64,000 nt of DNA from Tubulanus polymorphus (GCF_964204645.1 NC_134030.1:10871947-10935946), one strand, 5' to 3'. Positions 22,321 through 60,926 are shown, numbered from the stretch's first letter. Notes: generated from the letters alone by a model not told the origin. Numbers and translations: made by a program.

Positions 22321-23332
22321 ATGAATCGGACGTTATTGCCTCAGCCACCATCTTGGTTGTGGCAAATGTCCGTCTGGTACGCGTACAATTTCATAGTTTA
22401 TCTCATTTGGATTGTCGGTAGTATCGGCAACATTCTCACATTAGTTTTACTCATTCAATTGCGCAACGAACTAGACGGCCCCAGCTCTCAATACTTGTTC
22501 TCGTTGGCTACATCGGATTTGATACATTTAAACACAGTGTCATTGAAATGGCTGGAGAAGATCAGTATTGCATCGGGCACCGGTTTTGAAGTGTACGTAT
22601 TCTACGCATCCTCCGAAGTCGCCTGTAGGGTTTTGCTGGTAATTGCCAGTATCTCGATCAAACTGTCTACTTGGACTTTGTGCATTTTTGCCATTGAGAG
22701 ATCACTCGCAATTTCTATGCCTCTTAAAGTTGCTAATGCCTTTACCAAATCTCGACGGCGATATCTGATCGTTTGTCAGTGGACCATTGTCATCGCCGTG
22801 GAGAGCTCTTTTACCGATGTTTACGGAATTCGCCCTTACTCAGACGGACGTCAAAATTGCATGTTATTTCCTAATTACATCGATGGGAATGCCGTGCTTA
22901 GAATAGCGTTATCGATGTATATTCGTGTAACGCACTTTATTGTACCTTACATCATAAATACCTCTTGCATTATGGTAATCGCTAAGAAACTAACTTCAAG
23001 ACCGACTAAAGCTTCGAATAATGTACAAAATATTTAAACAAGACAGGACATGCATCAAAAACCTCGTAGCGATAACTTCTTTATATCTAATTCTATCGCT
23101 TCCCAATACCTTAGTAAATTCTATTTTTTACGCGAACCCGTCTATTTTGCACTGGCCTGGTAAACCCCACCTACTCTATTTCATTACATTGGTAACGGCA
23201 ACAATCGAAACCTCAAACAACGCCATTAATTTCTTCATATATTTTATCAGTTTTAGAAAGTTTCGAATTGAAATAATACGTTTTTGCCTCTCTCTACCCA
23301 GGAGTAAATGGGTACTTGGCCACACGGCATAA
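22321..23332 (+). pseudogene. Intronless class A GPCR with a single +1 frameshift in ICL3 (~23035); pseudogene or assembly indel
   Basis: TM1-5 lie in 22321-23037 (GSIGN, LATSD, IERS, IVPY). TM6-7 lie in another frame, 23021-23332 (LSLP, NNAINFFIY..RKFR). Removing one T from AATATTTAAA restores the frame. Confidence 0.8.
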
Positions 23333-25732: not shown

Positions 25733-26037
25733 ATTGGATGGAGTCTACTGGATTAAGAAAAGAAATGCATTTTTCTATGTCTGAAGAGTTAAATATTCGT
25801 TCACGCCTGAAAAAGAATGTTACAACAAGAAAATATGATAATAGAAATTACGTTCATTTCATTATTTCTTCTTATCTGCTTGTTTTTTTTTCTGCGAGGA
25901 TTTTCCAGGAACAGTTGCCAATGACTCCGTTTACCTCCTCGAAAGCGATTTGAACGATAAGAGAATAAATTGAATACAATCAGTTTCCGTTTTTGATCAT
26001 CCGTCAAAATATTTATTGTATCGACTCACGCATATTA

Positions 26038-28025
26038 CATGATGTCGAGTCAGTAGTTTATCCACTGTGGAATCGGGGGTTTATCCCGGGTATTTGCTTC
26101 TGTATTTGTTATAACCTGGTGAATACCCGCGACGAGCGAGATCGCGAGCGATTTCTTCTTCAGTCGAATCATCAACTGCAGCTTTAGCGTTCACCATCGA
26201 CCACAAACAGATCACAAACAACATGATCGGAAGTAAACTTCTCAACATATTCATCAGCATTGACGCTAAAAATTAAACAGTAGTCAACGTATTTTTGACG
26301 CAATAGATTAAGAAGATAGTCAATGTAGCCTATTATCATTATTTCTATTATTAGGATTATTCAATTTAACTGATAGAAAGTAGAGAAAATTACTTCTTCG
26401 TTAGAAAAATAGAAATCAATCCAACTTTAAAAACGTTTCTTACAAGTTGCTGTTCGAATGACGATGAAATTACGAATTTGACTTACCGATCATTTTTACG
26501 ATTGTTTTGGGAACAAATCACAGACGTTTACGAACAATTTATGAAGCTAAAATGAGAATTATATACACCATAAATGCATTGGAAATTACATTGTGATTAG
26601 ACTGTATTAACGATACGATTATGAAAAGATCGTAGACACACTGAAAATGCATTGAAACAGAAAGTAAATTCATTCTAAAAACACTACAATTACATTGTAA
26701 ATACACTACAAATATAATGAAAATCACGTGAATACATTGAAGATACATCGAATATTTTACGCATTGGCTATACGATGCACATACATTATAAATACAATTT
26801 TAATTCAATAGAAAAGGCGATCGCCAATACACCGGAAATGCATTTTCATTTACTTCCGTAAAAAGTAGAAGGAACCGTCTCTGGTGAATATTAAAACAAA
26901 TTATAAATGAAATTCGATTTTAGTTCGTGACATTTTAGAATCGATTTTTAACGGTTTTCTTGTTTTGCGAACAATAGCAAAATATCAGACGGCTCAAAAT
27001 CACGGCTTGACAATTCATCGTTATAGTAAACTTACCTTCGAATTCAAACGATTCCGATGAACTGATGAAATATCGATGAAAAATGATCGGTTTAAATCGA
27101 AACCCGGTTCATTGTCGAAACTCAAACTCTGCCGGAAATTTCGAATGCGTGCAGAAAATTCACTCGACCAAATATAGAAATAATAGAGGGCTCTTTAGCT
27201 ATTAATTGTTCCCCACGTCTCGCTCCGCAGGAACCCCGTCAATGCGACAGCCGTCGATTATTTCAGTCTCCGGTTGAGTTACTTTTTCGCACGCATTCGA
27301 TGTTTCGACATTAATAAATTGTGAATTCACGTTTTCATAATAAGGGCCACTGATTGACAGTCTGAGATGAGTGACACAGGTTGCACCGACTTTTAACATT
27401 CAAAATTACAGAGATTGTTCATAGAATAAACATCTCAATTTATTTCCTTTGTGTTTAAATGTATTTCTCGGTGTATTTACAATGTATTTTCGGTGCATTT
27501 GAAATGTGATTTCCGGTGTATTCACAATGTAATTTCCAAGGTATGCACGATGTATTCTGTTCTTATTCTAGTTTCATAAATTGCTCGTAAAAATCTGCGA
27601 TTTGTTGCAAAACCAATCCGTTAAAATGATCGGTAAGTCAAATTCGTGATTTCATTTTTAAACTTCGAATATGAACTTGTCACGCATTCAAATAGCGATT
27701 GATCTTTTCTTACGAAATATTTTTCTCTTTTTTTCTGTCTTAGATAAACATGATTAGAAACACAATGAAAATACGTTGACTACTGTTTAACTTTTAGCGT
27801 CAATGCTGATGAAAATGTTGAGAAGTTTACTCCGATCATGTTGTATGTGGATCTGTTTGTGGTCGATGGTGAACGCTAAAGCTGCAGTTGATGATTCGAC
27901 TGAAGAAGAAATCGCTCGCGATCTCGCTCGTCGCGGGTATTCACCAGGTTATAAGAAAAACGGAAGCAAATACCCGGGATAAACCACTGATTCCACAATG
28001 GATAAACTACTGATTCCACGTCATG
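26038..28025 (+). mobile_element. Foldback-type non-autonomous element, copy 1 (long TIRs, internal deletion near 27392)
   Basis: 26038-26297 is the reverse complement of ~27770-28025. It is homologous to 32522-34750 and 39861-42143. No transposase ORF. Confidence 0.85.
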
Positions 28026-28858
28026 TAATTTGTATGAATTAATAAATCATGATTTAAGTTGATGATCCTAAGCAAAAAATACTGTCTTTATATTGATTGT
28101 GTTCTTCGCTGTTCTATGGAAGTGCCGTAATTGATGATTCAATTGAAGGACTCGCTCGTGGCGGACTTTGTAGTAACTAGAAATTTTACTGGTCGGTTAG
28201 GAACTCGATTTTCCGAGCGAATAATATCCGTCGCAGATTTCGATGATGACCTGCAACCTCCACCTCCAGGTCCTCGATAGATGAGACGACAAAGATCCAA
28301 CTCCGATAAAACCGTGGATTATTTCAGCTAAAGCTATCAATATCTTGGCGTTTTCAAATATCGAATATGGGTATTCCAAGTACTTGTGACACAAAAGTGA
28401 AAACATCGATGAAAATTAATGCATTTAAAACCGCCGTCAAATCAAAAAGTTGCTTTCGTTATGTAGTTAATACATGTTTTTTTTATATTGTGCAGGTATT
28501 ACAACATCAAAACATCGGTAATCTCTATAGGAATGGGGTACCGGCACACACATCAGATGGCATAACAATAAATTTTGAACTGCATTTTTAGGTTCCTAAA
28601 TGGAGACGTTGTCAAACAAGTCTATACGGTATAGTTTTAGTAGAAATTGTCTTACTAATGAGAAAAGTTGATTCCAATTGAATCTAAATGTAGAACAGAC
28701 TGAAGAAAGGTAACCGAGTAACCACTTGCGAACCTGGTGGATTCTCGCCTGCCATACGTGGAATCCTCGATTGCCTTAGTAGCGGTGCCGGCACACCATT
28801 GTGCGATAATCCAAAAAATATCGGATCCACGACGGATTGCCTCCTCTAATATTCTAAG

Positions 28859-30187
28859 CTAAGTATTGGCTTCATTGCCTGACGAAGGTACGTTAGTTTT
28901 GTAGGTTTTGTCCGACCTTTGATTACTTTCCGATTGATCGGAAGTATTCTGCATTGACGCGTGGACATTCCGTCTCAGCACCGATCTACACGCGCCCATC
29001 TTCTGTTTGAAAAGGGCGCGCAACTCGTTACCAGAAATAACATAAATGAAGAAGTTGACGCTGTAGTTCATCTGGTAGAAGAACTCGATGATTTCTCTTG
29101 TCGGCATCTCGACGTATTTGGGAATGGAGCCGTAGTATTTCTTGTAGATCTCCTCGAATATCCAGGCCGGCAGCGTGAGTATCAAGAATGAGAATGTGAG
29201 CAGCATTAACATGAAGGTGATTTTGTTGCGTGATTTTGTCGCCAATTTCTTCGTTTCTTTGACCGAGCGTTGGCGTCGTGTTAACGAAAAGACGACCAAT
29301 CCGTTGCAGACGATGATTATCATCGCCGGAATGTATTCCATCGGAAATCCCAGGTAGAGTTGAGTTACCCATCCGATTTCGTACGGCACGGCACAAAACT
29401 GCACCTCCTCGACGAATCGGATATATATGATGTAGTACAGCGTCGATAGAATAGCGAATATAAACATACCGACGATGACGATGGCAGATGTTTTCGGCGT
29501 CAATCGTCGCGATATAACGGGAACCAAACGACGGTAAAGCGTTCGGCCGCAATAGTAGCCATCATCCAAGCACCACTAGTCTGAAATACATCCGGGATAC
29601 CTGGAATCGTAACAACAGAAACAACATTAAATCAATCATTATCAATATACAAATTTTTGGCGATAACTACAAATTAAGTATTCCGGAAACTTCGACTTCT
29701 TGAGCCGCTACACACATAAGGAATCGAATGTTACAAAATACATATTCAAAGTTACCTTCACTCAGAATACAACCAACATCGTCGGTAATCTTAATGAGAA
29801 GCCCTCCGCCGGTAGCTAGCGATATCATGTTAATCCAGGAACACAGACGAACTCCAATCATAGCCGTATCGCAAACGGCTAGTGTCATTATATACCAGGC
29901 GTACGTATGTTTCCTCATCGACCGGTCCAGCATCAGAATCAACGCGAACGTATTACCAACCATGCCAGTCAGCATGATCAATGGCGTGCCGAGAAACCGC
30001 ATCCAGCGGATCCATTGCGGCAACGTGTTTATATCCCAAAAATATTCGCTATCAACGCCGGCCAGTACTCGAGAATCCATTTGGTCGACGCTGCTTTAGT
30101 TGGTTCAGTCGTTGCGTTGATCGTCTGATTCAAGGTAGCGTTCAGAAATGTGGCTGGCTCCGTTGAGCTCAATGTTAAATTTGACAT
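28859..30187 (-). pseudogene. Class A GPCR triplicate copy A; two exons (30187-29756, 29600-28859) with two -1 frameshifts
   Basis: Highly similar to copies B and C. Exon 1 is 432 nt vs 439 (two 3-nt deletions plus one lost T at ~30040). Exon 2 is 742 nt vs 743 (one base lost at ~29516). Confidence 0.82.
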
Positions 30188-31189
30188 TGTCGATGATTAC
30201 CAAAGGTTGCGCACCTTAAACAAACAAAAAGAGATCTTCTAACTAACCGTATATCTTATGTGATATTATTACTATTATTATCATTACCATATTCAGTGCT
30301 CTGTTCACAGTAAAAATACAGCATATTAACACATAATAACTACAATGACAGGTTAAGCAGGACTACGAAAAAGCCTGGATAAAAAGATTGGTTTTTAAAA
30401 ATTCCTGAAACAGTTAAAACTATAAATGTGTATAATTATGCATGTGCGATGGTCATTTTCTCTTAAGTCTGGCTTTCAAAATATAATTTGCATTTATATT
30501 TTGTATTTATATCTACATACCTGTTATTGCTGCGGCAGGCTACTGTGCGGTTTCACCGGAAAGTGACCAGGCACGATTAAGCTCCCGAATTTATCGTGTA
30601 ACCGAAATCAATAATAAATGACGTCACTTATAATTCTTCAATGGTGTGTGAGAAAACCGATTATCGAATATTTCAGTTACACCCATATCCGAGAAGATTA
30701 ATACGCGAAAATTCATTTGCATTCTTTTATTCTAGATATAACATAATGCCCATAATCGATGGGTGCGAAAATTAAGGATTTGCCAGTGGAGCCAAGCGGA
30801 AGATTAAAATATCAATGCAAGGGTTGGTTTAGAATTGCAATGAATTTATACCGGCCATACAGTTTTTCCTGCATCATATAAAAAGGGTACCTATGACAAG
30901 CATGTCATTCTACTCTGATGCACGGACGAATAAATATTAATCAACTGTTAAAAAAAGAAAAAGAAAATCTTTAATTATGCGAAATCATCTCAGAAATATA
31001 ATATACGAATATTGATACATAGTTTCGGCCTAAGCTATATTGTTATAATAAATTAAGCTCAAATTTGCATTGACAAGCATATCATTCTACTCTGATGTAC
31101 GGACGAATAATCAACTGTTATTTGGATTTGTCTATTTTCTTTTAAAGGATCTAGTACCCCCCGCACTGCGCTAAACGACCAACAAACAC

Positions 31190-31405
31190 CCCACACGACA
31201 ATAGCCCATAGGTCCAACTCTAGCTAATTTCTGTTTTGCACATTTTGAGAATAATTAGCTATCCAGGTCCAAGCACAAACCCATCTTATACCTTAGATAT
31301 GTTGACGACATGTTCTGTGTTTTCAGAATTACCAGTCAATATGTTTTTTGATGAATTGAACTCAATGCACTCCAATTTGAAATTCACATTTGAAATCGGT
31401 CCCAA
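31190..31405 (+). mobile_element. Penelope-like element RT remnant (copies on minus at ~36420-36630, 45135-45335, 45757-45852)
   Basis: Frameshifted translation gives SP.GPTLANFCFAHFE..YLRYVDDMFCVF..FFDELNSMHSNLKFTFE, which are PLE RT motifs. Confidence 0.75.
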
Positions 31406-32521
31406 CCTCTTCTTGACGGTTAGCGGTAAAAATCCCCAATTCTTCAAATTAGGTAAAAATCCCCTCTTTCTGAATGTAGTGTAAGTAGATGATACAATCT
31501 TAAGGTCAATCAATTCATAATGTTGATACATATATCCAATTTATTATTGTGGGACATCATAAAGATATCATGAGTATACAAACTTTAGTATATACTATTT
31601 GAATTAATACATACAACAAATTAACATTCATTCATACTAAATTAGTACTCAAGGTTATCAAAAAGCTACTAAATTTTAATTCTGCGCGTCCATTTTAAAG
31701 TGAACCTTAAAGAGTGTTTGAAAGTTGCCATAGTGTTTGTATCGATGTGAATATTCTTCAGACCGAGTTCCTCGTAGATCGTAGGTGATTAAGATTAGTT
31801 GTTTTATGCCCGAGTGTTTATACTACCTACTGGAAATAAATTCATCACCGTCATCATTTAGAATTGTCGGTTTTACTCGATTTATGAAACAACGTCTAAC
31901 AGCACAGTGAAAAAAGGGCACCGACTGTGAAAAGGGCCAGTATTAATGCCCAGCGAGCGAGTTTGATTTCGAGTGCCATTTATTGGTATCATGCCACTAA
32001 ATTTGCGTTCACATTCAATTTGCTTGTGCCTTTGATAGATTTTTGGTGAAATTTGACCTGTTTCGATTAAACTTATAGAGCTAAGATAATGTATCTTTTA
32101 GAATAGTGCCCTTTTGTGCAAAGGAAAGTGCCTTAGATTGCCCTTTATGATTTTGGGTAATTTATTTTCATTCACATTTTGCTTTAGGCATAGTAGAAAG
32201 AAAATTATCTTTTATGGCGCACAAGTTGTGTCCCCTTTTATTAACTTTTTTTTCCCGAAACAAACATTTTTCAAGGGTATTTGAAAACCGCGACTACTGT
32301 ACGTGCTGCATGTGCGACAGTCTGGATCCGTAGCGCACCACTGCCTGTAGCGCACCACTGGTGACGTTTACTTTACAGAGGGCACTGATGCAGTGTTTCG
32401 GAAAAGTTTAGAAACATTAATTGACGCCGCCATAAACGATAAGAGAATAAATTGAATAAAATCAGACGTTCCGTTTTTGATCATCCGTCAAAATTTTTAT
32501 TGTATCGACTCACGCATATTA

Positions 32522-34750
32522 CATGATGTCGAATCAGTAGTTTATCCACTGTGGAATCAGTGGTTTATCCCGGGTATTTGCTTCTGTATTTGTTATAACC
32601 TGGTGAATACCCGCGACGAGCGAGATCGCGAGCGATTTCTTCTTCGGTCGAATCATCAATTGCAGCTTTAGCGTTCACCATCGACCACAAACAGATCACA
32701 AACAACATGATCGGAAGTAAACTTCTCAACATATTCATCAGCATTGACGCTAAAAATTAAACAGTAGTCAACGTTTTTTTGACGCTATAGATTAAGAAGA
32801 TAGTCAATGTAGCCTATTATCATTATTTCTATTATTAGGATTATTCAATTTAACTGATAGAAGGTAGAGAAAATTACTTCTTCGTTAGAAAAATCAATCT
32901 AACTTTAAAAACGTTTCTTACAAGTTGCTGTTCGAATGACGATGAAATTACGAATTTGACTTACCGATCATTTTGACGATTGTTTTGGGAACAAATCACA
33001 GATGTTTAGGAACAATTTATTAAGCTAAAATGAGAATTATATACACCATAAATGCATTGGAAATTACATTGTGATTAGACTGTATTAACGATACGATTAT
33101 GAAAAGATCGTAGACACATTGAAAATGCATTGAAACAGAAAGTAAATTCATTCTAAAAACACTACAATTACATTGTAAATACACTACAAATATGATGAAA
33201 ATCACGTGAATACATTGAAGATACATCGAATATTTTATGCATTGGCTATACGATGCACATACATTATAAATACAATCTTAATACACTAAAAAATCCGATC
33301 GCTAATACACTGGAAATACATTTTCGGTTCCTTCCGTAAAAAGTAGAAGGAACCGTCTCTGGTGAATATTAAAACAAAATATAAATGAAATTCGATTTTA
33401 GTTCGTGACATTTTAGAATCGAATTTTAACGGTTTTCTTTTTTTTGCGAACAATAGCAAAATATCAGATCTACCAAATCACGGCTTGACAATTCATCGTT
33501 ATAGTAAACTTACCTTCGAATTCAAACGATTCCGATGAATTGATGAAATATCGATGAAAAATGATCGGTTTATATCGAAACCCGGTTCATTGTCGAAACT
33601 CAAACTCTGCTGGAAATTTCGAATGCGTGCAAAAAATTCACTCGACCAAATATAGAAATAATAGAGGGCTCTTTAGCTATTAATTGTTCCCCGCGTCTCG
33701 CTCCGCAGGAACCCCGTCAGTGCGAGAGCCGTCGATTATTTCAGTCTCCGGTTGAGTTACTTTTTCGCACGCATTCGATGTTTCGACAATTAAGTGACAA
33801 TAAATTGTGAATTCACGCTTTCATAATTCGGGCCACTGATTAACAGTCTGAGATGAGTGACACAGGTTGCACCGATACGGTCAATATAAACCGTCCATTT
33901 TCATCGATGTTTCATCAGTTCTTCGGAATCGTTCGTATTCGAAGGTAAGTTTTCTTTTCGAGGAATCATAAAGTTTCGATCGGTGTCTCCAGTTGATGCT
34001 GACAGTATACGGGAGAAGTACGGACGAATCTCTGATAATTTGTTATCATTCGGATTAAATTTATGCAAAATTCATACATTTCATGATCGTCAAACCTTGA
34101 TTCTAAAATTGTGTAGAGATATTGAACTTTAACTTGAACCATTTGAGATGTTCGCTAAAAATCTGAGGAAATATCACAATTCAAATTTTTATATAATAAG
34201 ATTTTTAACATTCAAAATTACAGAGATTGTTCATAGAAGAAGCATTACAATTTATCTCCTTTGTGTTTAAAATGTATTTCTCAGTGTATTTACAATGTAT
34301 TTCAGCGAAAATCAGCGATTTGTTGCAAAACCAATCCGTTAAAATGATCGGTAAGTCAAATTCGTGATTTCATTTTTAAACTTCGAATATGAACTTGTCA
34401 CGCATTCAAACAGCGATTGATCTTTTCTTACGAAATATTTTTCTCTTTATTTCTGTCAATACAATTAGATAATCATGATTAGAAACACAATGAAAATACG
34501 TTGACTACTATTTAATTTTTAGCGTCAATGCTGATGAAAATGTTGAGAAGTTTACTTCCGATCATGTTGTTAGTGATCTGTTTGTGGTCGATGGTGAACG
34601 CTAAAGCTGCAGTTGATGATTCGACTGAAGAAGAAATCGCTCGCGATCTCGCTCGTCGGGGGTATTCACCAGGATATAAGAAATACAGAAGCAAATACCC
34701 GGGATAAACCACTGATTCCACAGTGGATAAACTACTGATTCGATATCATG
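32522..34750 (+). mobile_element. Foldback-type non-autonomous element, copy 2; centre of the large palindrome
   Basis: ~250-bp TIRs. Nested internal inverted repeats at 32950/34340, 33507-33575/33885-33952 and 33619/33761. Its flanks are themselves inverted copies of each other. Confidence 0.88.
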
Positions 34751-35684
34751 TAATATGCGTGAGTCGATACAATAAAAATTTTGACGGATGATCAAAAACG
34801 GAACCTGATTTTATTCAATTTCATTCTCTTATCGTTTATGGCGGCGTCAATTAATGTTTCTAAACTTTCCCGAAACACTGCATCAGTGCCCTCTGTAAAG
34901 TAGACGACACCAGTGGTGCGCTACAGGCGCGGGTCCAGACTGTCGCACATGCAGCACGTACAGTAGTCGCGGTTTTCAAATACCCTTGAAAAATGTTTGT
35001 TTCGGGAAAAAAGTTAATAAAAGGGGACACAATTTGTGCGCCATAAAAGATAATTTTCTTTCTACTATGCCTAAAGCAAAATGTGAATGAAAATGAATTA
35101 CCCAAAATCATAAAGGGCAATCTAAGGCACTTTCTTTTACTCCAGAGGGCACTATTCTAAAAGAGACATTATCGTAGCTCTATAAGTTTAATCGAAACAG
35201 GTCAAATTTCACCAAAAATCTATCAAAGGCACAAGCAAATTGAATGTGAAGGCAAATTTAGTGGCATTATACCAATAAATGGCACTCAAAATCAAACTCG
35301 CTCGTACATGGGCATTCATACTGGCCCTTTTCACAGTCGGTGCCCTTTTTTCACTGTGCTGTTAGACGTTGTTTCATGAGTCGAGTAAAACCGACAATTC
35401 TAAATGATGACGGTGATGAATTTATTTCCAGTAGGTAGTATAAACACTCGGGCATAAAACAACTAATCTTAATCATCTACGATCTACGAGGAACTCGGTC
35501 TGAAGAAATTCACATCGATACACTATGACAACTTTCAAACACTCTTTAAGGTTCACTTTAAAATGGACGCGCAGCATTGAAATTTAGAAGTAGCCCAGTG
35601 TCGGATGCTTTTCTGTAAACCCGCAAAATAAAAGTATTACCAATTTCTAAAGGTCCTTGAATATCGGTGTCAAGCAGAGTTGTA

Positions 35685-35810
35685 GGTAAAAATCCCCTGG
35701 GAAAAAATCCCCTAGGTAAAAATCCCCTTGGTAAATATCCCCTTGGTAAAAATCCCCTAGGTAAAAATCGATCCCCAAATATTCAAAGTAGGTGAATATC
35801 CCCACTTGGT
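35685..35810 (+). repeat. 15-bp tandem GGTAAAAATCCCC(T) array, probably a DNA-transposon terminal repeat
   Basis: About six tandem units inside a ~570-bp segment present in only one palindrome arm. The same motif occurs at 31425-31466 and 36356-36398, and a related GGTAAAAATGCC array at 47867-47945. Confidence 0.7.
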
Positions 35811-37628
35811 GATTTTCAAGAACATTTCAAAGCAAAACGTTACTCCAATTTTGTTCATTTGCAATGAGACTGAAATGTGTTTGAACTGCGCAATGGAATC
35901 TTTCGTTGGAATAAATTCTTTAAGTAAACTTTTAGAATGAAATAAATTGTTAGAATTAATAAGAATAATGAACTTTTTATATGATATATCTTAAAATTCG
36001 AACTGGAATATTTTTGAACAGTCTCTTGTTGACTTGCGGTATATTTGGGCAGTGCAATGCCATGAGTTATAAGCGATAATGAACTTTTAATTCTAGATAT
36101 TTTAGATTCAAGCAAGTGTAATATATTTGAAATGTGTGGTGATGAACCTTTTCATTAAGCTTTTGATAACTTTGAGTACTAATTTAGTATTAATGAACTG
36201 TTAATTTGTAGTATGTATTAATTCAAATAGTATATACTAAAGTCTGTATACTCATGATATCGTTATGATGTTCCACAATAATAAATTGGATATATGTATC
36301 AATATTATGAATTGATTGACCTTAAGATTGTATCTACTTACACTACATTCAGAAAGAGGGGATTTTTACCTACTTTGAAGAATTGGGGATTTTTACCGCT
36401 AACCGTCAAGAAGAGGTTGGGACCGATTGCAAATGTGAATTTCAAATTGGAGTGCATTGAGTTCAATTCATCAAAAAAACATATTAACTGGTAATTCTGA
36501 AAACACAGAAAATGTCGTCAACATATCTATAAGATGGGTTTGTGCTTGGACCTGGATTAGCTAATTATTATCAAAATGTGCAAAACAGAAATTAGCTAGA
36601 GTTGGACCTATGGGCTATTGTCGTGTGGGGTGTTTGTTGGTCATTTACCGCAGTCCGAGGGGAACTACATCCTTTAAAAGAAAATAGACAAATCCAAATA
36701 ACAGTTGATTAATCTCTATTCGTCCGTGCATCATAGTAGAATGACATGCTTGTCAATGCAAATTTGAGCATAATTTATTATAACAATATAGCTTAGGCCG
36801 AAACTATGTATCAATATTCGTATATTATATTTCTGAGATGATTTCGCATAATTAAAGATTTTCTTCTTTTTTTTAACAGTTGATTAATATCTATTCGTCC
36901 GTGCATCAGAGTAGAATGACATGCTTGTCAAAGCTACCCTTTTTATACGATGCAGGAAAAACTGTATGGCCGGTATAACTTCATTGCAATTCTAAACCAA
37001 CCTTTGCATTGATATTTTAATCTTCCGCTTGGCTCCACTGGCAAATCCTTAATTTTCGCACTCATCGATGATGGGCATTATGTTATTTCTAGAATAAAAG
37101 AATGCAAATGAATTCTCGCGTATTAATCTTCTCGGATATGGGTGTAACTGAAATATTCGATAATCGGTTTTCTCACACACCATTGAAGAATTATACGTGA
37201 CGTCATTTACAATTGATTTCGGTTTCACGATAAATTCGGGAGCTTAATCGTGCCTGGTCACTTTCCGGTGAAACCGCACAGTAGCCTATAACTGCCGCAG
37301 CAATAACAGGTATGTAGATATGAATATGAATGCAAGTTATATTTTGAAAGCCAGACTTTAGAGAAAATGACCATCGCACATGCATAATACACATTTGTAG
37401 TTTTAACTGTTTCAGGAATTTTTAAAAACCAATCTTATTATCCAGGCTTTTTCGTGGTCCTGCTTAACCTGTTATTGTAGTTATCATGTGTTAATATGCT
37501 GTATTTTTACTGTGAACAGAGCACTGAATATGGTAATGATAATAATAGTAATAATATCACATAAGATATACGGTTAGTTAGAAGATCTCTTTTTGTTTAA
37601 GGTGCGCAACCTTTGGTAATCATCGACA

Positions 37629-39030
37629 ATGTCAAATTTAACATTGAGCTCAACGGAGCCAGCCACATTTCTGAACGCTACCTTGAATCAGACGATCAAC
37701 GCAACGACTGGTGAACCAACTAAAGCAGCGTCGTCGACCAAATGGATTCTCGAGTACTGGCCGGCGTTGATAGCGAATGTTTTTTGGGATATAAACACGT
37801 TACCGCAATGGATCCGCTGGATGCGCTTTCTCGGCACGCCATTGATCATGCTGACTGGCCTGGTTGGTAATACGTTCGCGTTGATTCTGATGCTGGACCG
37901 GTCGATGAGGAAACATACGTACGCCTGGTATATAATGACACTAGCCGTTTGCGATACGGCTATGATTGGAGTTCGTCTGTGTTCCTGGATTAACATGATA
38001 TCGCTAGCTACCGGCGGAGGGCTTCTCATTAAGATTACCGACGATGTTGGTTGTATTTTGAGTGAAGGTAACTTTGAATAATTATTTTGTAACATTCGAT
38101 TTCTTATGTGTGTGGGCTCCAGAAGTCGAAGTCTCCGGAATCGTGAACTATGATCATGAACTATGATCATGATCATGAAACAATACAGTAAAAATGGTGA
38201 TAGAAAATACTTAATTTGTAGTTATCCCCAAAAATATGTATATTGTTAATGATTGATTTAAAGTTGTTTCTGTTGTTACGATTCCAGGTATTCCGGATGT
38301 ATTTCAGACTACTGGTGCTTGGATGATGGCTACTATTGCGACCGAACGCTTTACCGTCGTTTGGTTTCCGTTCATATCGCGACGATTGACGCCGAAAATA
38401 TCTGCCATCGTCATCGTCGGTATGTTTATATTCGCTATTCTCTCGACGCTGTACTACATCATATATATCCGATTCGTCGAGGAGGTGCATTTTTGTGCCG
38501 TGCCGTACGAAATCGGATGGGTAACTCAGCTCTACCTGGGATTTCCGATGGAATACATTCCGGCGATGATAATCATCGTCTTCAACGGATTGGTCGTCTT
38601 TTCGTTAACCCGACGCCAACGCTCGGTCAAAGAAACGAAGAAATTGGCGACAAAATCACGCGACAAAATCACCTTCATGTTAATGCTGTTCACGTTTTCA
38701 TTCTTGATACTCACGCTGCCGGCCTGGATATTCGAGGAGATCTACAAGAAATACTACGGCTCCATTCCCAAATACGTCGAGATGCCGACAAGAGAAATCA
38801 TCGAGTTCTTCTACCAGATGAACTACAGCGTCAACTTCTTCATTTATGTTATTTCCGGTAACGAGTTGCGCGCCCTTTTCAAACAGAAGATGGGCGCGTG
38901 TAGATCGGCGCTGAGACGGAATATCCACGCGTCAATGCAGAATACTTCCGATCAATCGGAAAGTAATCAAAGGTCGGACAAAACCTACAAAACTAACGTA
39001 CCTTCGTTAAGCAACGAAGCCAATACTTAG
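37629..39030 (+). CDS. Class A GPCR triplicate copy B; exons 37629-38067 and 38288-39030, 393 aa, intact
   Basis: The phase-1 intron (GAAG|GTAACT...TTCCAG|GT) gives an open 1182-nt CDS. N-terminal N-glycosylation sites, GLVGN, LAVCD, ERF, YIPA, LTLP, NYSVNFFIY..SGNELR. Confidence 0.93.
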
Positions 39031-39860
39031 CTTATTATATTAGAGGAGGCAATCCGTCGTGGATCCGATATTTTTGGATTATCGCACAATGGTGTGCCGG
39101 CACCGCTACTGTGGCAATCGAGGATTCCACGTATGGCAGGCGAGAATCCACCAGGTTCGCAAGTGGTTACTCGGTTACCTTTCTTCAGTATTTTCTACAT
39201 TTAGATTCAATTGCAATCAACTTTTCTCATTAGTAAGACAATTTCTACTAAAACTATACCGTATAGACTTGTTTGACAACGTTTCCATTTAGGAGCCTAA
39301 AAATCCAGTTCAAATTTCATTGTTATGCCATCTGATGTGTGTGCCGGTACCCCATTCCTATAGAGATTACCGATGTTTTGATTTTGTAATACCTGCACGA
39401 TATAAAAAACATGTATTAACTACATAACGACAACAACTTTTTGATTTAACGGCGGTTTTAAATGCATTTATTTTCATTGATGTTTTCACTTTTGTGTCAC
39501 AAGTACTTGGAATACCCATATTCGATATTTGAAAACGCCAAGATTTTGTTAGCTTTAGCTGAAATAAACGACGGTTTTATCGGAGTTGGATCTTTGTCGT
39601 CTCATCTATCGAGGACCTGGAGGTGGAGGTTGCAGGTCATCATCGGAATCTGCGACGGATATTATTCGCGCGGAAAATCGAGTTCCTAACCGACCAGTAA
39701 AAATTCTAGTTACTACAAAGTCCGCCACGAGCGTGTCCTACCATTTAATCATCAATTACGGCACTTCCATAGAATATCGAAGAACACAATCAATATAAAG
39801 ACAGTATTTTTTGTTTAGGATCATCAACTTAAATCATGATTTATTAATTCATACAAATTA

Positions 39861-42143
39861 CATGACGTGGAATCAGTAATTTATCCATTGTGGAATCAGT
39901 GGTTTATCCCGGGTATTTGCTTCTGTATTTCTTATAACCTGGTGAATACCCACGACGAGCGAGATCGCGAGCGATTTCTTCTTCAGTCGAATCATCAACT
40001 GCAGCTTTAGCGTTCACCATCGACCACAAACAGATCACTAACAACATGATCGGAAGTAAACTTCTCAACATTTTCATCAGCATTGACGCTAAAAATTAAA
40101 CAGTAGTCAACGTATTTTCATTGTGTTTCTAATCATGATTATCTAATTGTATTGACAGAAATAAAGAGAAAAATATTTCGTAAGAAAAGATCAATCGCTG
40201 TTTGAATGCGTGACAAGTTCATATTCGAAGTTTAAAAATGAAATCACGAATTTGACTTACCGATCATTTTAACGGATTGGTTTTGCAACAAATCGCAGAT
40301 TTTTACGAGCAATTTATGAAACTAAAATAAGAACAGAATACATCGTGCATACCTTGGAAATAACATTGTAAATACACTGGAAATCACATTTCAAATGCAT
40401 CGAAAATACATTGTAAATACACTGAGAAATACATTTCAAACACAAAGGAAATAAATTGTAATGTTTCTTCTATGAACAATCTCTGTAATTTTGAATGTTA
40501 AAAATCTTATTATATAAAAATTTGAATTGTGATATTTCCTCAGATTTTTAGCGAACATCTCAAATGGTTCAAGAAAGTTCAATATCTCTACACAATTTTA
40601 GAATCAAGGTTTGACGATCGTGAAATGTATAAATTTTCCATAATTTTAATCCGAATGATAACAAAATATCAGAGATTCGTCCGTACTTCTCCCGTATACT
40701 GTCAGCATCAACTGGAGACACCGATCGAAGCTTTGATTCCTCGAAAAAAAAACTTACCTTCGAATACGAACGATTCCGAAGAACTGATGAAACATCGATG
40801 AAAATGGACGGTTTATATTGACCGCATCGGTGCAACCTGTGTCACTCTCAGACTGTCAATCAGTGGCCCGAATTATGAAAGCGTGAATTCACAATTTATT
40901 GTCACTTAATTGTCGAAACATCGAATGCGTGCGAAAAAGTAACTCAACCGGAGACTGAAATAATCGACGGCTCTCGCACTGACGGGGTTCCTGCGGAGCG
41001 AGACGCGGGGAACAATTAATAGCTAAAGAGCCCTCTATTATTTCTATATTTGGTCGAGTGAATTTTTTGCACGCATTCGAAATTTCCGGCAGAGTTTGAG
41101 TTTCGACAATGAACCGGGTTTCGATTTAAACCGATCATTTTTCATCGATATCTCATCAGTTCATCGGAATCGTTTGAATTCGAAGGTAAGTTTACTATAA
41201 CGATGAATTGTCAAGCCGTGATTTGGTATATCTGATATTTTGCTGTTGTTCGCAAAAAAAAGAAAACCGTTAAAATTCGATTCTAAAATGTCACGAACTA
41301 AAATCGAATTTCATTTATATTTTGTTTTAATATTCACCAGAGACGGTTCATTCTACTTTTTACGGAAGGAAATGAAAATGTATTATTTTCCAGTATATTA
41401 GCGATCGGTTTTGCTAGTGTATTAAGATTGTATTTATAATGTATGTGCATCGTATAGCCAATGCATAAATTATTCGATGTATCTTCAATGTATTCACGTG
41501 ATTTTCATCATATTTGTTGTGTATTTACAATGTAATTGTAGTGTTTTTAGAATGAATTTACTTTCTGTTTCAATGCATTTTCAGTGTGTTTACGATGTTT
41601 TCATAATTGTATCGTTAATACAGTCTAATCACAATGTAATTTCCAATGCATTAATGGTGTATATAATTCTCATTTTAGCTTCATAAATTGCTCGTAAACA
41701 TCTGTGATTTGTTCCCAAAGCAATCGTCAAAATGATCGGTAAGTCAAATTCGTAATTTCATTGTCATTCGAACAGGAACTTGTAAGAAACGTTTTTAAAG
41801 TTAGATTGATTTTTCTAACGAAGTAATGTTTTCTACTTTCTATCAGTTAAATTGAATACTCCTAATAATAGAAATAATGATGATAGGCTACATTGACTAT
41901 CTTCTTAATCTATAGCGTCAATGCTGATGAAAATGTTGAGAAGTTTACTTCCGATCATGTTGTTAGTGATTTGTTTGTGGACGATGGTGAACGCTAAAGC
42001 TGCAGTTGATGATTCGACTGAAGAAGAAATCGCTCGCGAACTCGCTCGTCGCGGGTATTCACCAGGTTATAAGAAATACAGAAGCAAATACCCGGGATAA
42101 ACCACTGATTCCACAATGGATAAATTACTGATTCCACGTCATG
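39861..42143 (-). mobile_element. Foldback-type non-autonomous element, copy 3 (inverted); centre of the second palindrome
   Basis: Reverse complement of copies 1 and 2. TIRs at 39861-40090 and ~41915-42143. Both flanks are the GPCR 3' flank. Confidence 0.88.
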
Positions 42144-42976
42144 TAATTTGTATGAATTAATAAATCATGATTTAAGTTGATGATCCTAAGCAAAAACTAC
42201 TGTCTTTATATTGATTGTGTTCTTCGATATTCTATGGAAGTGCCGTAATTGATGATTAAATGGTAGGACACGCTCGTGGCGGACTTTGTAGTAACTAGAA
42301 TTTTTACTGGTCGGTTAGGAACTCGATTTTCCGCGCGAATAATATCCGTCGCAGATTCCGATGATGACCTGCAACCTCCACCTCCAGGTCCTCGATAGAT
42401 GAGACGACAAAGCTCCAACTCCGATATAAAACCGTCGTTTATTTCAGCTAAAGCTAACAAAATCTAGGCGTTTTCAAATATCGAATATGGGTATTCCAAG
42501 TACTTGTGACACAAAAGTGAAAACAACAATGAAAATTAATGCATTTAAAACCGCCGTTAAATCAAAAAGTTGTTGTCGTTATGTAGTTAATACATGTTTT
42601 TTATATTGTGCAGGTATTACAACATCAAAACATAGGTAATCTCTATAGGAATGGGGTACCGGCACACACATCACATGGCATAACAATGAATTTTGAACTG
42701 GATTTTTAGGCTCCTAAATGGAAACGTTGTCAAACAAGTCTATACGGTATAGTTTTAGTAGAAATTGTCTTACTAATGAGAAAAGTTGATTCCAATTGAA
42801 TCTAAATGTAGAAAATACTGAAGAAAGGTAACCGAGTAACCACTTGCGAACCTGGTGGATTCTCGCCTGCCATACGTGGAATCCTCGATTGCCTTAGTAG
42901 CGGTGCCAGCACCCCATTGTGCGATAATCCAAAAAATATCGGATCCACGACGGATTGCCTCCTCTTATATTCTAAG

Positions 42977-44378
42977 CTAAGTATTGGCTTCATTGCCTGA
43001 CGAAGGTACGCTAGTTTTGTAGGTTTTGTCCGACCTTTGATTACTCTCCGATTGATCGGAAGTATTCTGCATTGACGCGTGGATATTCCGTCTCAGCGCC
43101 GATCTACACGCGCCCATCTTCTGTTTGAAAAGGGCACGCAACTCGTTGCCGGAAATAACATAGATGAAGAAGTTGACGCTGTAGTTCATCTGGTAGAAGA
43201 ACTCGATGATTTCTCTTGTCGGCATCTCGACGTATTTGGGAATGGAGCCGTAGTATTTCTTGTAGATCTCCTCGAATATCCAGGCCGGCAGCGTGAGTAT
43301 CAAGAATGAGAACGTGAGCAGCATTAACATGAAGGTGATTTTGTTGCGTGATTTTGTCGCCAATTTCTTCGTTTCTTTGACCGAGCGTTGGCGTCGGGTT
43401 AACGAAAAGACGACCAATCCGTTGCAGACGATGATTATCATCGCCGGAATGTATTCCATCGGAAATCCCAGGTAGAGTTGAGTTACCCATCCGATTTCGT
43501 ACGGCACGGCACAAAACTGCACCTCCTCGACGAATCGGATATATATGATGTAGTACAGCGTCGAGAGAATAGCGAATATAAACATACCGACGATGACGAT
43601 GGCAGATATTTTCGGCGTCAATCGACGCGATATGAACGGAAACCAAACGACGGTAAAGCGTTCGGCCGCAATAGTAGCCATCATCCAAGCACCAGTAGTC
43701 TGAAATACATCCGGAATACCTGGAATCGTAACAACAGAAACAACATTAAATCAATCATAAACAATATACATATTTTTGGGGATAACTACAAATTAAGTAT
43801 TTTCTATCACCATTTTTACTGTATTGTTTCATGATCACGATCATAGTTCATGATCATAATTCACGATTCCGGAGACTTCGACTTCTGGAGCCTACACACA
43901 TAAGAAATCGAATGTTACAAAATACATATTCAAAGTTACCTTCACTCAAAATACAACCAACATCGTCGGTAATCTTAATGAGAAGCCCTCCGCCGGTAGC
44001 TAGTGATATCATGTTAATCCAGGAACACAGACGAACTCCAATCATAGCCGTATCGCAAACGGCTAGTGTCATTATATACCAGGCGTACGTATGTTTCCTC
44101 ATCGACCGGTCCAGCATCAGAATCAACGCGAACGTATTACCAACCAGGCCAGTCAGCATGATCAATGGCGTGCCGAGAAAGCGCATCCAGCGGATCCATT
44201 GCGGTAACGTGTTTATATCCCAAAAAACATTCGCTATCAACGCCGGCCAGTACTCGAGAATCCATTTGGTCGACGACGCTGCTTTAGTTGGTTCACCAGT
44301 CGTTGCGTTGATCGTCTGATTCAAGGTAGCGTTCAGAAATGTGGCTGGCTCCGTTGAGCTAAATGTTAAATTTGACAT
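42977..44378 (-). CDS. Class A GPCR triplicate copy C; exons 44378-43940 and 43719-42977, 393 aa, intact
   Basis: Same exon lengths (439 + 743 nt) and splice sites as copy B, with an open frame. Confidence 0.93.
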
Positions 44379-45604
44379 TGTCGATGATTACCAAAGGTTG
44401 CGCACCTTAAACAAAAAGAGAACTCCTAACTAACCGCATATCTTATGTGATATTATTACTATTACTATCATTACCATATTCAGTGCTCTGTTCACAGTAA
44501 ACATACAGCATATTAACACATGATAACTACAATGACAGGTTAAGCAGGACCACGAAAAAGCCTGGATAATAAGATTGGTTTTTAAAAATTCCTGAAACAG
44601 TTAAAACTATAAATGTGTATTATGCATGTGCGATGGTCATTTTCTCTAAAGTCTGGCTTTCAAAATACAACTTGCATTTATATTTATATCTACATACCTG
44701 TTATTGCTGCGGCAGTTATAGGCTACTATGCGGTTTCACCGGAAAGTGACCAGGCACGATTAAGCTCCCGAATTTATCGTGAAACCGAAATCAATTGTAA
44801 ATGACGTCACTTATAATTCTTCAATGGTATGTGAGAAAACCGATTATCGAATATTTTAGTTACACCCATATCCGAGAAGATTAATACGCGAGAATTCATT
44901 TGCATCCTTTTATTCTTAAACTAACATAATGCCCATCATCGATTGGTGCGAAAATTAAGGATTTGCCAGTGGAGCCAAGCGGAAGATTAAAATATCAATG
45001 CAAGGGTTGGTTTAGAATTGCAATGACGTTATACCGGCCATACAGTTTTCCCTGCATCGTATAAAAAGGGTAGCTTTGACAAGCATGTCATTCTACACTT
45101 ATGCACGGACGAATTGTGATTTTGCATTTATGTAAATTTCAAATTGGAGTGCATTGAGTTCAAGTCTCCAAAAAACATATTAAACTGGTCATTCTGAAAA
45201 CACAGAAAATGTCGTCAACATATCTAAGGTATAAGATGGGTTTGTGATTGGACCTGGATAGCAAATTATTCTCAAAATGTGCAAAACAGAAATTAGCTAG
45301 AGTTGGACCTATGGGCTATTGTCGTGTGGGGTGTTTGTTGGTCGTTTACCGCAGAGCAAGGGGTGCTCCTTTAAAAAAATAGACAAATCCATATAACAGT
45401 TGATTAATATTTATTCGTCCGTGCATCAGAGTAGAATTGACATGTTTACAGATGATATAAGACTTGGTTGCTAATTCTTTACTATTGTTTTCCAGCTGTT
45501 ATGTCATTATTTTAATCTATTCCCCTTTCAACATTTTAATCGCTCACTCTGTTGCTATTGATTTGGTCTTGTATAAATATCTTGTAATATTCTCCTGTTC
45601 TCAG

Positions 45605-45648
45605 TACGCCTGATGATGGGCAATAGTCTTTAGCTGAAACGTTGCGCA
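45605..45648 (+). ncRNA. Minimal type I hammerhead ribozyme motif in a Penelope-like terminal repeat
   Basis: CGC-CTGATGA-(stem II region)-GAAAC-GTT-GCG: conserved core boxes, palindromic AACGTT stem III and a 3-bp stem I. It lies next to PLE RT relics. Confidence 0.6.
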
Positions 45649-46159
45649 AATATATAACTCTTCTGTTCAAGTTTCTCGTTTTGGCTGAATTTATTGTGGG
45701 ATTTCTCTCGTTATCATCTTACACGGATATTGTGCATCTTCTCGTCTCATATCGAAGGTATAAGATGGGTTTGTGCTTGGACCTGGATGGCAATTTATTC
45801 TCAAATTGCGCAAGACAGAATTTAGCTAGAGTTGGACCTGGCCTATGGGCTATCTATTGTTATACCATCAACTTGTTTAAATAGGTGTATTTTTCATTAT
45901 CGTATGACAATGACATATTATTTGACAACGAGATTCATCGTGCTTACGCTTTTATGGTTGTCTAAACGCTTTTATGGTTGTCTAAATCTAAATGGACTTT
46001 TCTCTTAGATGAATCAATCACTTGAGAAAACTATTTACCGATACCCGAGTAGAAGAATGGAAGTCCTGTATATTAGGTGGGTGCGTGATAATGTATGGAT
46101 TTGGTAGCTTATAAATCCGGTCCAAAGTTCGTTGAAAATGAACTAATTTTGACAACGGC

Positions 46160-46640
46160 CCATTACGATTACGATAACGATTTTATTTACACTCCAACCA
46201 TTTCCATGGTATATGGAGGAAAACTATTACAGATGTTTATACAAATATTTACAAAACAACACTGAAGTGATAAAAATTTAGAGAATGAAAACGTAACAAA
46301 ATATATATACATTATAACTATTTACAATACATATATATGCTATTGGTGGGATCTATATACATTTAAGCCGGTTTTAATGAATTTAACCTATTGGACCGTT
46401 GGGTTTTTCAAAATACCAAGGGTATTAAAGTTATTCAAATTCAAAAAACTTTTGTGGGGTTCATCAAGAAAGGTACAGTCAAACAGAAAATGGGATTCAT
46501 CACCTTGAGTATTACAAGCGGGCATATTCTATCTGCTCTGTCTAAGTGAAGGTTTGAAAATTTGTTCACAGGTGAGATATAGCACCCGACCCTAAATTCA
46601 AATAAACTAGTTTCTAAGTCATCACCAAGTTTTAATGCTC
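46160..46640 (-). mobile_element. LINE 3' end with AATAAA and short (ATCGTA)n tail
   Basis: Translation LETSLFEFRVG..PVN..RADRICP. The 3' terminal motif is shared with 47165-47200. Confidence 0.7.
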
Positions 46641-46708
46641 GTTGTGGCATCTGGTGGGATAGCTGGTTTTGTGGGTAGCCCATTCTTGAATATATAAGGA
46701 TCAAATTT

Positions 46709-52056: not shown

Positions 52057-57610
<5,554 letters not shown>

Positions 57611-60640: not shown

Positions 60641-60926
<286 letters not shown>

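Follow-up and report, generated by a model that had tools for sequence, protein, structure and literature searches.

How did three copies of one rhodopsin-type GPCR segment come to lie in alternating orientation in a single block of the Tubulanus polymorphus genome, and what are the units that separate them? A preliminary description of the window (the whole 64,000-nucleotide stretch analysed here; GCF_964204645.1, NC_134030.1:10871947-10935946) had given the layout as E1 - A(-) - E2 - B(+) - E3 - C(-) and had read the E units as foldback elements. Self-BLAST and a repeat search reproduced this layout over the whole rearranged block (25953-45444), in which E3 is inverted and C is followed by an inverted 315-bp piece. 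The GPCR segments are ~3-5 kb each and run in -/+/- orientation (A, 28029-32515, minus strand; B, 34757-39854, plus strand; C, 42147-45114, minus strand), separated by E units of 2.0-2.3 kb.

Each E unit has inverted ends formed by a ~265-bp repeat (up to 343 bp), here called T, which occurs at 26031-26295(+) and 27768-28029(-) in E1, at 32515-32779(+) and 34493-34757(-) in E2, and at 39854-40118(+) and 41889-42147(-) in E3. The inverted arms measure 265-700 bp with 77-97% identity and enclose spacers of 1.1-1.7 kb, and the interior is non-coding. E1 (26031-28029, plus strand) has the parental configuration, with an a-type left end and a b-type right end, and carries a 326-bp deletion relative to E2 (32515-34757, plus strand); the interior of E3 (39854-42147, minus strand) is inverted relative to both. 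Two nested palindromes described earlier, of ~16 kb around E2 and ~8 kb around E3, were both recovered by self-BLAST. The large one (~26.0-42.1 kb) is head-to-head and centred on E2, with arms 93-96% identical, and the small one (36893-40461 versus 45114-41547; 95%) is tail-to-tail and centred on E3. The layout thus stands, with three corrections: copy A has become a pseudogene, copy C has been truncated, and the E unit is in its own right a degenerate palindrome, as seen in E2, where it is centred near 33700.

Copy B of the receptor (37629-39030, plus strand; exon 1 37629-38067, exon 2 38288-39030) is intact, with a 220-nt GT-AG intron (38068-38287), and its product is identical to NCBI LOC141907735 (P0001, 393 aa). 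Copy C (42977-44378, minus strand) is also intact, retains GT-AG and differs from B by 18 nt and 9 aa. Copy A (28859-30187, minus strand) has lost single bases in both exons, with the first stop at codon 53, and has two further deletions of 3 bp; its intron has lost 67 alignment columns and gained a 2-bp insertion, a net loss of 65 bp. The exon-2 ORFs score 35-43 bits against Pfam PF00001 (7tm_1; gathering score cut-off 30.5), and the precomputed annotation of P0001 lists PF00001 and PF10324. Searches for the receptor used the database protein P0001 as query, the joined exons serving only for the identity comparison with P0001, and a PDB sequence search returned no relative at E ≤ 1e-5. We classify the gene as an orphan rhodopsin-class receptor (Pfam PF00001). 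Two dispersed repeats mark the segments. A 570-bp insertion specific to B (35587-36158), identified by self-BLAST and genome search, belongs to a repeat with at least 401 candidate copies genome-wide and serves as an arm-specific marker; a short repeat in the GPCR 3' flank (42685-42920; at least 860 candidate copies) is found in the flanks of all three copies and therefore predates the duplications.

The inverted ends of E are gene sequence. T corresponds to exon 2, with the acceptor at the 3' end of the intron, of a conserved two-exon gene for a predicted small secreted peptide, SP, and each E is a head-to-head pair of SP genes. In the window, the exon-2 ORF is intact in the a-type copies E1L (26084-26260, minus strand) and E2L (32568-32744, minus strand), the b-type copy E3L (39907-40083, minus strand), and the recombinant copies E2R (34528-34704, plus strand) and E3R (41921-42097, plus strand); the b-type copy E1R (27803-27979, plus strand) carries two indels that compensate each other, so that only part of the signal peptide is read in another frame. 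Exon 1 of E3R (41677-41738, plus strand), comprising the 5' UTR and a probable start codon (ATGATCG), was placed from a spliced contig of run X8 and from conservation among 12 copies, and is followed by a 177-nt GT..AG intron (41739-41915, plus strand). The contig of X8 (2014) joins 41737 to 41915, spliced exactly at GT..AG; we infer that X8 and X4 are RNA runs.

Conservation across the family follows the same gene structure. Across 12 SP copies, conservation covers the exon-1 block, the GTAAGT donor and the TTTAG acceptor and is poor in the intron; 10 of 11 copies retain an intact exon-2 ORF; and the window copies differ from those at C6:1.77 Mb by four synonymous changes and one non-synonymous change. 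At the outer edge of T the alignment shows an AATAAA signal together with a conserved 3'-end motif. From its N terminus, the predicted product reads as a signal peptide, then an acidic pro-region, an RR site and, last, a short variable peptide with a terminal Gly. The signal peptide is near-invariant across the alignment, the mature part is variable, and most copies end in Gly-stop, motifs from which we regard SP as a putative secreted, processed peptide precursor. Families of secreted-peptide precursors, whether toxin, defence or neuropeptide-like, combine a conserved signal and pro-region with a hypervariable mature peptide, and SP shares with them the near-invariant signal, the acidic pro-region, the dibasic site, the variable C-terminal peptide and the tandem arrays.

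About 20 open SP copies occur genome-wide, at about 10 places on three contigs, and outside the window they are single or in direct tandem arrays. Searches took the exon-2 ORF as query and left out the four-residue exon-1 extension (MIAS). The 59-aa ORF had no homologue candidate in a set of 5.8 billion proteins, and an SP profile run against 1.84 billion representatives gave a single match, P0003, and no true relative; we judged P0003 spurious, as it is a 1244-aa repeat protein of unrelated make-up. Three SP peptide strings had no full-text literature match, and the SP peptides had none in the main text of a nemertean neuropeptidomics study (PMC8557429). SP appears to be an unannotated, lineage-restricted family of ~20 secreted-peptide micro-genes, and a new peptide family.

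This gene structure bears directly on the proposal that E is a mobile element. Foldback elements are non-autonomous transposable elements with long terminal inverted repeats (TIRs), and E shares with them the long inverted ends (265-700 bp) around a non-coding middle; both orientation switches fall in those ends, the geometry is compatible with alternative-end or inverted-repeat-mediated events, and the capacity of foldback elements to provoke inversions and inverted duplications is paralleled by the repeats of E. The preliminary description went further, to a self-amplifying and possibly invertible GPCR cassette that would drive GPCR expansions, a reading to which we now give almost no credence. 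The supposed TIR is a conserved, spliced coding exon of SP; other loci hold one T only, and there homology continues for 110-800 bp beyond its outer edge. There are only ~20 SP copies, in a gene-like arrangement, compared with 400-860 or more dispersed candidate copies on many contigs for true transposons. E has no transposase (the longest ORF in its interior is <70 aa) and no sub-repeat structure, its copies are not dispersed with shared ends, and no target-site duplication is definable, because the flanks of E in the window are copies of each other. As a foldback transposon, E fails.

The expected association elsewhere in the genome was also missing. No palindrome was seen around other SP copies genome-wide, no GPCR was present in the 10 kb examined around each of them, and the divergent SP copies of C10 (3.452 and 3.466 Mb) showed neither a second palindrome nor a GPCR. 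Conversely, no SP copy lies near the nearest GPCR paralogues or the many GPCR arrays of this genome. With other copies associated neither with GPCRs nor with palindromes, the idea of a cassette or engine of receptor expansion is left unsupported.

The inverted copies might have been created falsely, by a fold-back chimera or by merged haplotypes. Palindromes are a known assembly hazard, and in Logan contigs of the probable source run the three copies are merged into pieces of 876 bp or less that say nothing on the junctions. We hold such an artefact to be very improbable. In reads from an independent Illumina run, X5, the body of C had a depth of ~26, where read volume predicts ~7 and the single clean bin of single-copy sequence (45800-45999) gave ~11; this bin was the only usable control because most of 45444-46999 is a high-copy repeat; the C body is thus at ~2.4-3.6x depth, about 3x. 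At eight of the eleven listed C-body sites that set C apart from A=B, 106 of 155 reads carried the A/B letter, a pooled share (0.68) that fits 2/3 and rejects the 1/2 expected of two equal types (p=5e-6). The remaining three sites differ: 43136 has no C letter at all, and 43148 and 43163 give only 0.33-0.38, in a double-depth patch. The private 65-bp intron deletion of A is also present in X5, as a joint. Depth, letter share and deletion joint together confirm the copy number, about three GPCR copies, in a second animal; the order and orientation of the copies rest only on the assembly and the arm-specific markers. Three distinct copies are impossible from two haplotypes, and the window contains no N gaps. 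As the preliminary description already noted, arm divergence and indels argue against a simple read-foldback artefact: the arms are 2-5% apart and carry private indels, among them the 65-bp deletion in A and the 326-bp deletion in E1, as well as a private transposon insertion and private frameshifts.

The positions of the orientation switches were mapped with 307 diagnostic columns that distinguish a-type from b-type ends. Each recombinant end contains one clean a/b crossover, inside T, which bears out the earlier claim that both switches lie within the long inverted ends. At the head-to-head junction, E2R is b-type on its inner side and a-type on its outer side, with the change in the interval 34680-34723. 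At the tail-to-tail junction, E3R changes from a-type (inside) to b-type (outside) at ~41912/41913, at the boundary of the SP intron and exon 2, where two 17-bp near-repeats lie 35 bp apart. The outer breakpoint of C (45114-45444), located by self-BLAST and breakpoint comparison, is complex: homology of C to A and B ends at 45114, 0.74 kb upstream of the GPCR start codon; 147 bp have been lost, and at 45130-45444 a 315-bp piece lies opposite to the expected orientation, with a high-copy repeat beyond it. This junction shows no evident homology, and the inverted 315-bp segment is a further strand switch, typical of iterative template switching.

Read along the plus strand, the block consists of colinear pieces of one parental template (SP pair - GPCR - SP pair), alternately forward, reverse, forward and reverse (25953-34680, 34723-41912, 41913-45114 and 45130-45444). 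Each of the first two strand switches joins corresponding positions of SP exon-2 copies that are inverted relative to each other. We consider it probable that the block is a germline inverted triplication of the ODIRA or DUP-TRP/INV-DUP kind, mediated by inverted repeats, with the SP pairs as those repeats, and later reworked; both the replicative mechanism and the order of events we infer. Strand switching guided by the inverted SP repeats during replication or repair would have made the block, with ODIRA-type closed forks or MMBIR/DUP-TRP/INV-DUP-type template switches as candidate routes, probably in more than one step or with gene conversion afterwards. Later, ordinary decay would have added the frameshifts of A, the transposon insertion in B, the deletion in E1 and the truncation of C.

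The divergence data point away from a single step. Private changes in the X-body number 59 in A, 31 in B and 36 in C of 2883 columns (chi-square p=0.005; p=0.011 for the non-coding part alone), indicating three copies of unequal age. For most of its length, E3 resembles E2 more closely than it does E1, which counts against one-step ODIRA, since that predicts E3 to be a copy of E1; likewise, no E follows C, whereas the one-step model predicts a fourth. Later conversion or secondary rearrangement could explain both the unequal ages and the missing fourth E, and the three-way site patterns are mosaic, compatible with sequential events and with conversion alike.

The same divergences fit a history of two rounds of direct tandem duplication of the SP pair plus GPCR, followed by inversion of the middle unit through non-allelic homologous recombination (NAHR) between SP copies in opposite orientation. 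B and C differ by 2.3% and E2 and E3 by ~2.2% (outside the a-side 600 bp), as two rounds would leave them, with 3.1-3.3% for A-B and A-C and 3.5-4.5% for E1 against E2 and E3; the two hybrid ends, one with b inside and a outside and the other with a inside and b outside, can be read as reciprocal products of one crossover between inverted T copies; and elsewhere in this genome SP and GPCR families have grown by direct tandem arrays. We nevertheless hold this history to be unlikely, though a real contender. It needs at least five events, among them a separate truncation of C and a second recombination flipping one SP-pair interior, the latter because a single inversion yields E2 or E3 mirror-imaged relative to what is observed. 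It leaves two features of the end of C unexplained, the loss of 147 bp and the inversion of the 315-bp piece, and the switch in E3R coincides with a 17-bp near-repeat offset by 35 bp, not with long aligned homology.

Inverted triplication guided by inverted repeats is well studied as new mutation in yeast chemostats and human genomic disorders; to our knowledge, old, fixed examples in wild animals whose two junctions can still be placed within a few tens of bases have been described less often. [quoted passage not shown] The Tubulanus block likewise has an inverted central copy, E2 and E3 with their spacers at the two palindrome centres, one switch inside T at each, and a tail-to-tail spacer (E3) inverted relative to the left-hand parental unit (E1). 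It differs in that its repeats are gene copies of 265-700 bp with spacers of 1.1-1.7 kb, whereas those of ODIRA are a few bases, in its unequal copy ages and absent right-hand fourth repeat, and in being an old event (2-5% divergence) in the germline of a wild animal. In DUP-TRP/INV-DUP rearrangements, inverted low-copy repeats (LCRs) mediate the event at the human MECP2 and PLP1 loci (PMC11293582, PMC4352052). Shared features are switching or recombination within an inverted-repeat pair that leaves the middle copy inverted and evidence of iterative switches; the outer end of C, a further junction without long homology, may be another. Unlike the human cases, which have one main junction in inverted repeats, the block has both; its repeats fall well short of human LCRs in length and now share only ~95% identity, and no flanking duplicated-only segments are definable. 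The likeness to both systems noted in the preliminary description thus holds, in the direct-inverted-direct copies, the nested palindromes and the switches in inverted ends. The probable mechanism of rearrangement is one already known, not a new amplification engine.

The proximity of peptide and receptor genes invites a functional reading. Upstream of copy B, and on its strand, lies one SP gene; the upstream side of C is truncated, and B and C each have one convergent SP gene downstream. That SP peptides are ligands or co-regulated partners of the flanking orphan GPCR, the two forming a co-amplifying peptide-receptor cassette, is a long shot; if true, divergent SP pairs would supply the inverted repeats that make such a cassette prone to inverted amplification and flipping.

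For this locus, the tempting idea of a GPCR-amplifying foldback transposon is removed. What the locus does show is that two ordinary genes lying head-to-head can serve as an 'interrupted inverted repeat', and that the product of an inverted triplication can persist, here as two intact receptor genes and a pseudogene. The SP family itself may hold modest interest for studies of nemertean toxins and neuropeptides, in a phylum that is venomous and mucus-secreting.

The assembly (268 Mb, 77 contigs) has no Ns in the window, where self-BLAST and a repeat search located a repeat of ~265 bp (up to 343 bp), here T, at six sites: 26031-26295 (+), 27768-28029 (-), 32515-32779 (+), 34493-34757 (-), 39854-40118 (+) and 41889-42147 (-). 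Pairs of T delimit three units of 2.0-2.3 kb (E1, E2 and E3), with the interior of E3 inverted relative to those of E1 and E2, and self-BLAST placed three copies of a GPCR-bearing segment, X, beside them: A (28029-32515, -), B (34757-39854, +) and C (42147-45114, -). Both flanks of E2 are inverted copies of the 5' side of X and both flanks of E3 are inverted copies of its 3' side, with palindrome arms 92.6-97.8% identical. The direct-inverted-direct triplication with E at its junctions, proposed in a preliminary description, was confirmed as assembled by both searches; the block is a well-preserved natural inverted triplication. Elsewhere, the window holds a perfect 154-bp self-complementary palindrome (54514-54678, 100% identical to its own reverse complement) and a perfect 6-bp-period microsatellite of ~290 bp (60641-60926, within the ORF at 60374-60991, +).

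The long ORFs of X match Pfam 7tm_1 and Srw. In GPCR copy B, on the + strand, exon 1 (37629-38067) and exon 2 (38288-39030) are separated by a GT-AG intron of 220 nt; this copy exactly matches NCBI LOC141907735, whose 393-aa protein we call P0001. Copy C (44378-42977, -) is intact and differs from B by 18 nt and 9 aa. Copy A (30187-28859, -) is a pseudogene, with a frameshifting 1-bp deletion in each exon and the first stop at codon 53; it also carries two 3-bp deletions and a net 65-bp deletion in the intron (67 alignment columns lost, 2 bp inserted). Because no PDB relative of P0001 was found at E<=1e-5, we classify it as an orphan, lineage-specific rhodopsin-class receptor. Contigs of sequencing run X4 (source project, probably RNA) that cover exon 2 and the 3' UTR of GPCR C with zero differences hint at transcription of this copy. 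Two more 7tm_1 ORFs just left of the block (20000-20986 and 22321-23037, both +) share only ~21-25% identity with P0001, and the locus forms a mixed GPCR cluster. The two closest paralogues of P0001 (60-68% identity) lie on the window's own contig, C6 (C6:6777785-6779790), and on contig C8 (C8:10807039-10809046), and their identical scores suggest that a segment was either copied between the contigs very recently or duplicated in the assembly.

E contains no ORF above ~70 aa. T encodes a 59-aa ORF, read outward, which coincides exactly with the best-conserved core of T in an alignment of the six window copies and five from elsewhere, and which is intact in 10 of these 11 copies, the exception being the right end of E1 (E1R), where the frame is locally shifted. 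Relative to the ~12% diverged copies at C6:1.77 Mb, the window copies show four synonymous changes and one non-synonymous change over 44 codons. At its N-terminus, the product has a hydrophobic, signal-peptide-like part that closes with VNA; an acidic stretch, an RR site and a short Tyr/Lys-rich peptide with a terminal Gly-stop follow. Across the wider family, the signal part hardly varies, and the segment past the dibasic site is hypervariable. The alignment also reveals an AATAAA signal ~75 nt 3' of the stop and a conserved GATGATCAAAAA motif at the outer edge of T. A 187-nt contig of X8 (a 2014 run with 18.8 Mb of contigs, probably a transcriptome) links 41677-41737 directly to 41915-42030, and the 177 nt absent from it start with GTAAGT and end with TAG. 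An exon-1 block with AAAATGATCG at its end, the donor and the acceptor (intron end TTTAG, exon start CGTCAATG) are conserved in 12 of 12 copies examined; the intron is poorly conserved and of variable length, and the exon-1 ATG stays in frame over the splice. The conserved ORF, spliced contig and conserved splice sites together identify T as exon 2, with the preceding 3' end of the intron, of a small spliced gene, SP. The degenerate extension of the 'TIR' to 570-700 bp is the remaining intron, exon 1 and promoter of SP. Every E consists of two SP genes arranged head to head and is itself an old, imperfect palindrome, with its centre near 33.70 kb in the case of E2. At E1R (27803-27979), two compensating indels keep the overall frame of SP and scramble eight signal-peptide residues; with pseudogene A and a 326-bp deletion in E1, they suggest decay of the entire leftmost unit.

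Genome-wide, 20 SP ORFs are open, six in the window and 14 on C6, C10 and C4 (the latter two being further contigs); those on C6 beyond the window are at 1.77, 1.85, 21.6, 22.5 and 22.7 Mb. Loci outside the window always consist of one T and half an interior, and homology extends past the outer edge of T, passing into X-3'-like sequence at two C6 loci (1.77 and 1.85 Mb) and, for up to ~800 bp, into X-5'-like sequence at the copies on C10, so this edge is not a terminus. With T a spliced coding exon, lacking a terminus and single elsewhere, the initial view of E as a foldback transposon is not supported. SP loci elsewhere are single copies or direct tandem arrays with periods of 2.4 kb and ~5 kb; none outside the window is the centre of an inverted duplication, and no GPCR-like coding sequence lies within the 10 kb fetched around each. 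Nor were SP copies found at the closest paralogues of P0001 (C6:6.78 Mb and C8:10.81 Mb) or at many other GPCR clusters of the genome, which are mostly same-strand arrays. The association with inverted duplications predicted for the element is therefore absent at every other SP locus, and the idea that it forms an engine of GPCR expansion finds no support. Two true mobile elements are present: a 570-bp insertion private to B (35587-36158; at least 401 dispersed candidate copies) and a short repeat (~42685-42920; at least 860).

The T ends are of two types, a (E1L and E2L, the left ends of E1 and E2) with the X-5'-side flank and b (E1R and E3L) with the X-3'-side flank. Mapping over 307 diagnostic columns gave one clean switch in each of the right ends E2R and E3R: E2R is type a outside (34903-34723) and type b from 34680 inward, and E3R is type b outside (42296-41913) and type a from 41912 inward. 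Both orientation switches thus fall inside the long inverted ends, as first described. At the E3R switch, 35 bp have been lost between two near-repeats of acceptor sequence, each of 17 bp, and a few isolated type-b sites deeper in this end point to small patches of conversion. On the left, the block edge at 25953 is ~40 bp past the 3'-end motif of the SP gene furthest left. At the outer end of C, homology ends at 45114 with 147 bp missing, and the following 315 bp (45130-45444) are in the orientation opposite to expectation and give way to a high-copy repeat. From the switch points and this outer end, the block resolves into four stretches copied from a single parental template, alternately forward (25953-34680 and 41913-45114) and reverse (34723-41912 and 45130-45444).

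Across 2883 columns of the X body, A, B and C carry 59, 31 and 36 private changes, with pairwise divergences of 3.1% (A-B), 3.3% (A-C) and 2.3% (B-C); equal copy ages were rejected (p=0.005; p=0.011 on the non-coding part only). Among the E units, E3 is the odd one out over ~600 bp of the a-side, and E1 elsewhere. Two direct tandem duplications followed by NAHR inversions, the main rival explanation, would fit the divergences but need at least five events and leave the outer end of C unexplained, and we consider this history rather unlikely. The comparison with the geometry of known inverted-repeat-mediated triplications is apt. A strict ODIRA or DUP-TRP/INV-DUP event that acted on (E-X-E) in one step would have left copies of equal age, an E3 copied from E1 and a fourth E after C, and none of the three holds as the block stands. 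B/C gene conversion and a secondary rearrangement of the outer junction, the latter described in yeast amplicons (PMC4689423), could reconcile the block with the one-step model. On balance, we lean towards strand switching that was guided by inverted repeats in the course of replication or repair and may have taken two steps.

Raw Illumina reads of X5, from another sample and study, were compared with 41000-46999 at 90% likeness. At four listed sites (43136 and 43859 within the C body, 41828 and 42040 within E3R), the C letter is wholly missing from X5, which is therefore not the assembled haplotype. The read volume (1934 Mb over 268 Mb) predicts a depth of ~7x; the observed depth was 10.7 in the one clean single-copy bin (45800-45999), ~26 on average over the C body (43000-45399) and 50-77 in the T bins. 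The A/B letter occurred in 106 of 155 reads (0.68), compatible with 2/3 (p=0.67) and rejecting 1/2 (p=5e-6), pooled over 8 of the 11 listed C-body sites where C is unlike A=B; the pool omits 43136, where the C letter is absent, and 43148 and 43163, in a double-depth patch with a share of only 0.33-0.38. The private 65-bp deletion of A was seen as the joint 43801->43892 in X5 and in X1, the probable source run, whose contigs collapse A, B and C and are too short for order or orientation. Depth, A/B share and the deletion joint together show about three distinct copies in the second animal. Right of C, 45444-46999 is nearly all high-copy repeat (X5 depth 100-1150x versus ~7-11x), where many reads join 46150-46158 to 46648, the signature of a repeat family that has an internal indel of ~490 bp. 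Another joint, of opposite strand, connects 42684 with 46648.

The SP family extends to a direct tandem array of five genes at C6:21615831-21635888 (also C6:22524673 and C6:22665955; period ~4.8-5.3 kb), each adjoining a long 50-bp-period minisatellite; compared with the window copies, the signal peptide is nearly identical and the peptide past the dibasic site (RRKK) entirely different. About 1 kb downstream of the fragmentary SP copy at C10:3.466 Mb, three consecutive long + strand ORFs (C10:3466995-3470997; 427, 454 and 398 aa) may represent a retroelement or else a large gene. SP is not annotated, and protein homologue, profile and literature text searches detected no relatives; it is a new orphan peptide family. 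The inverted repeats of the triplication are two divergently oriented small genes for putative secreted peptides and, speculatively, the SP peptides may form a ligand-receptor cassette with the GPCR.
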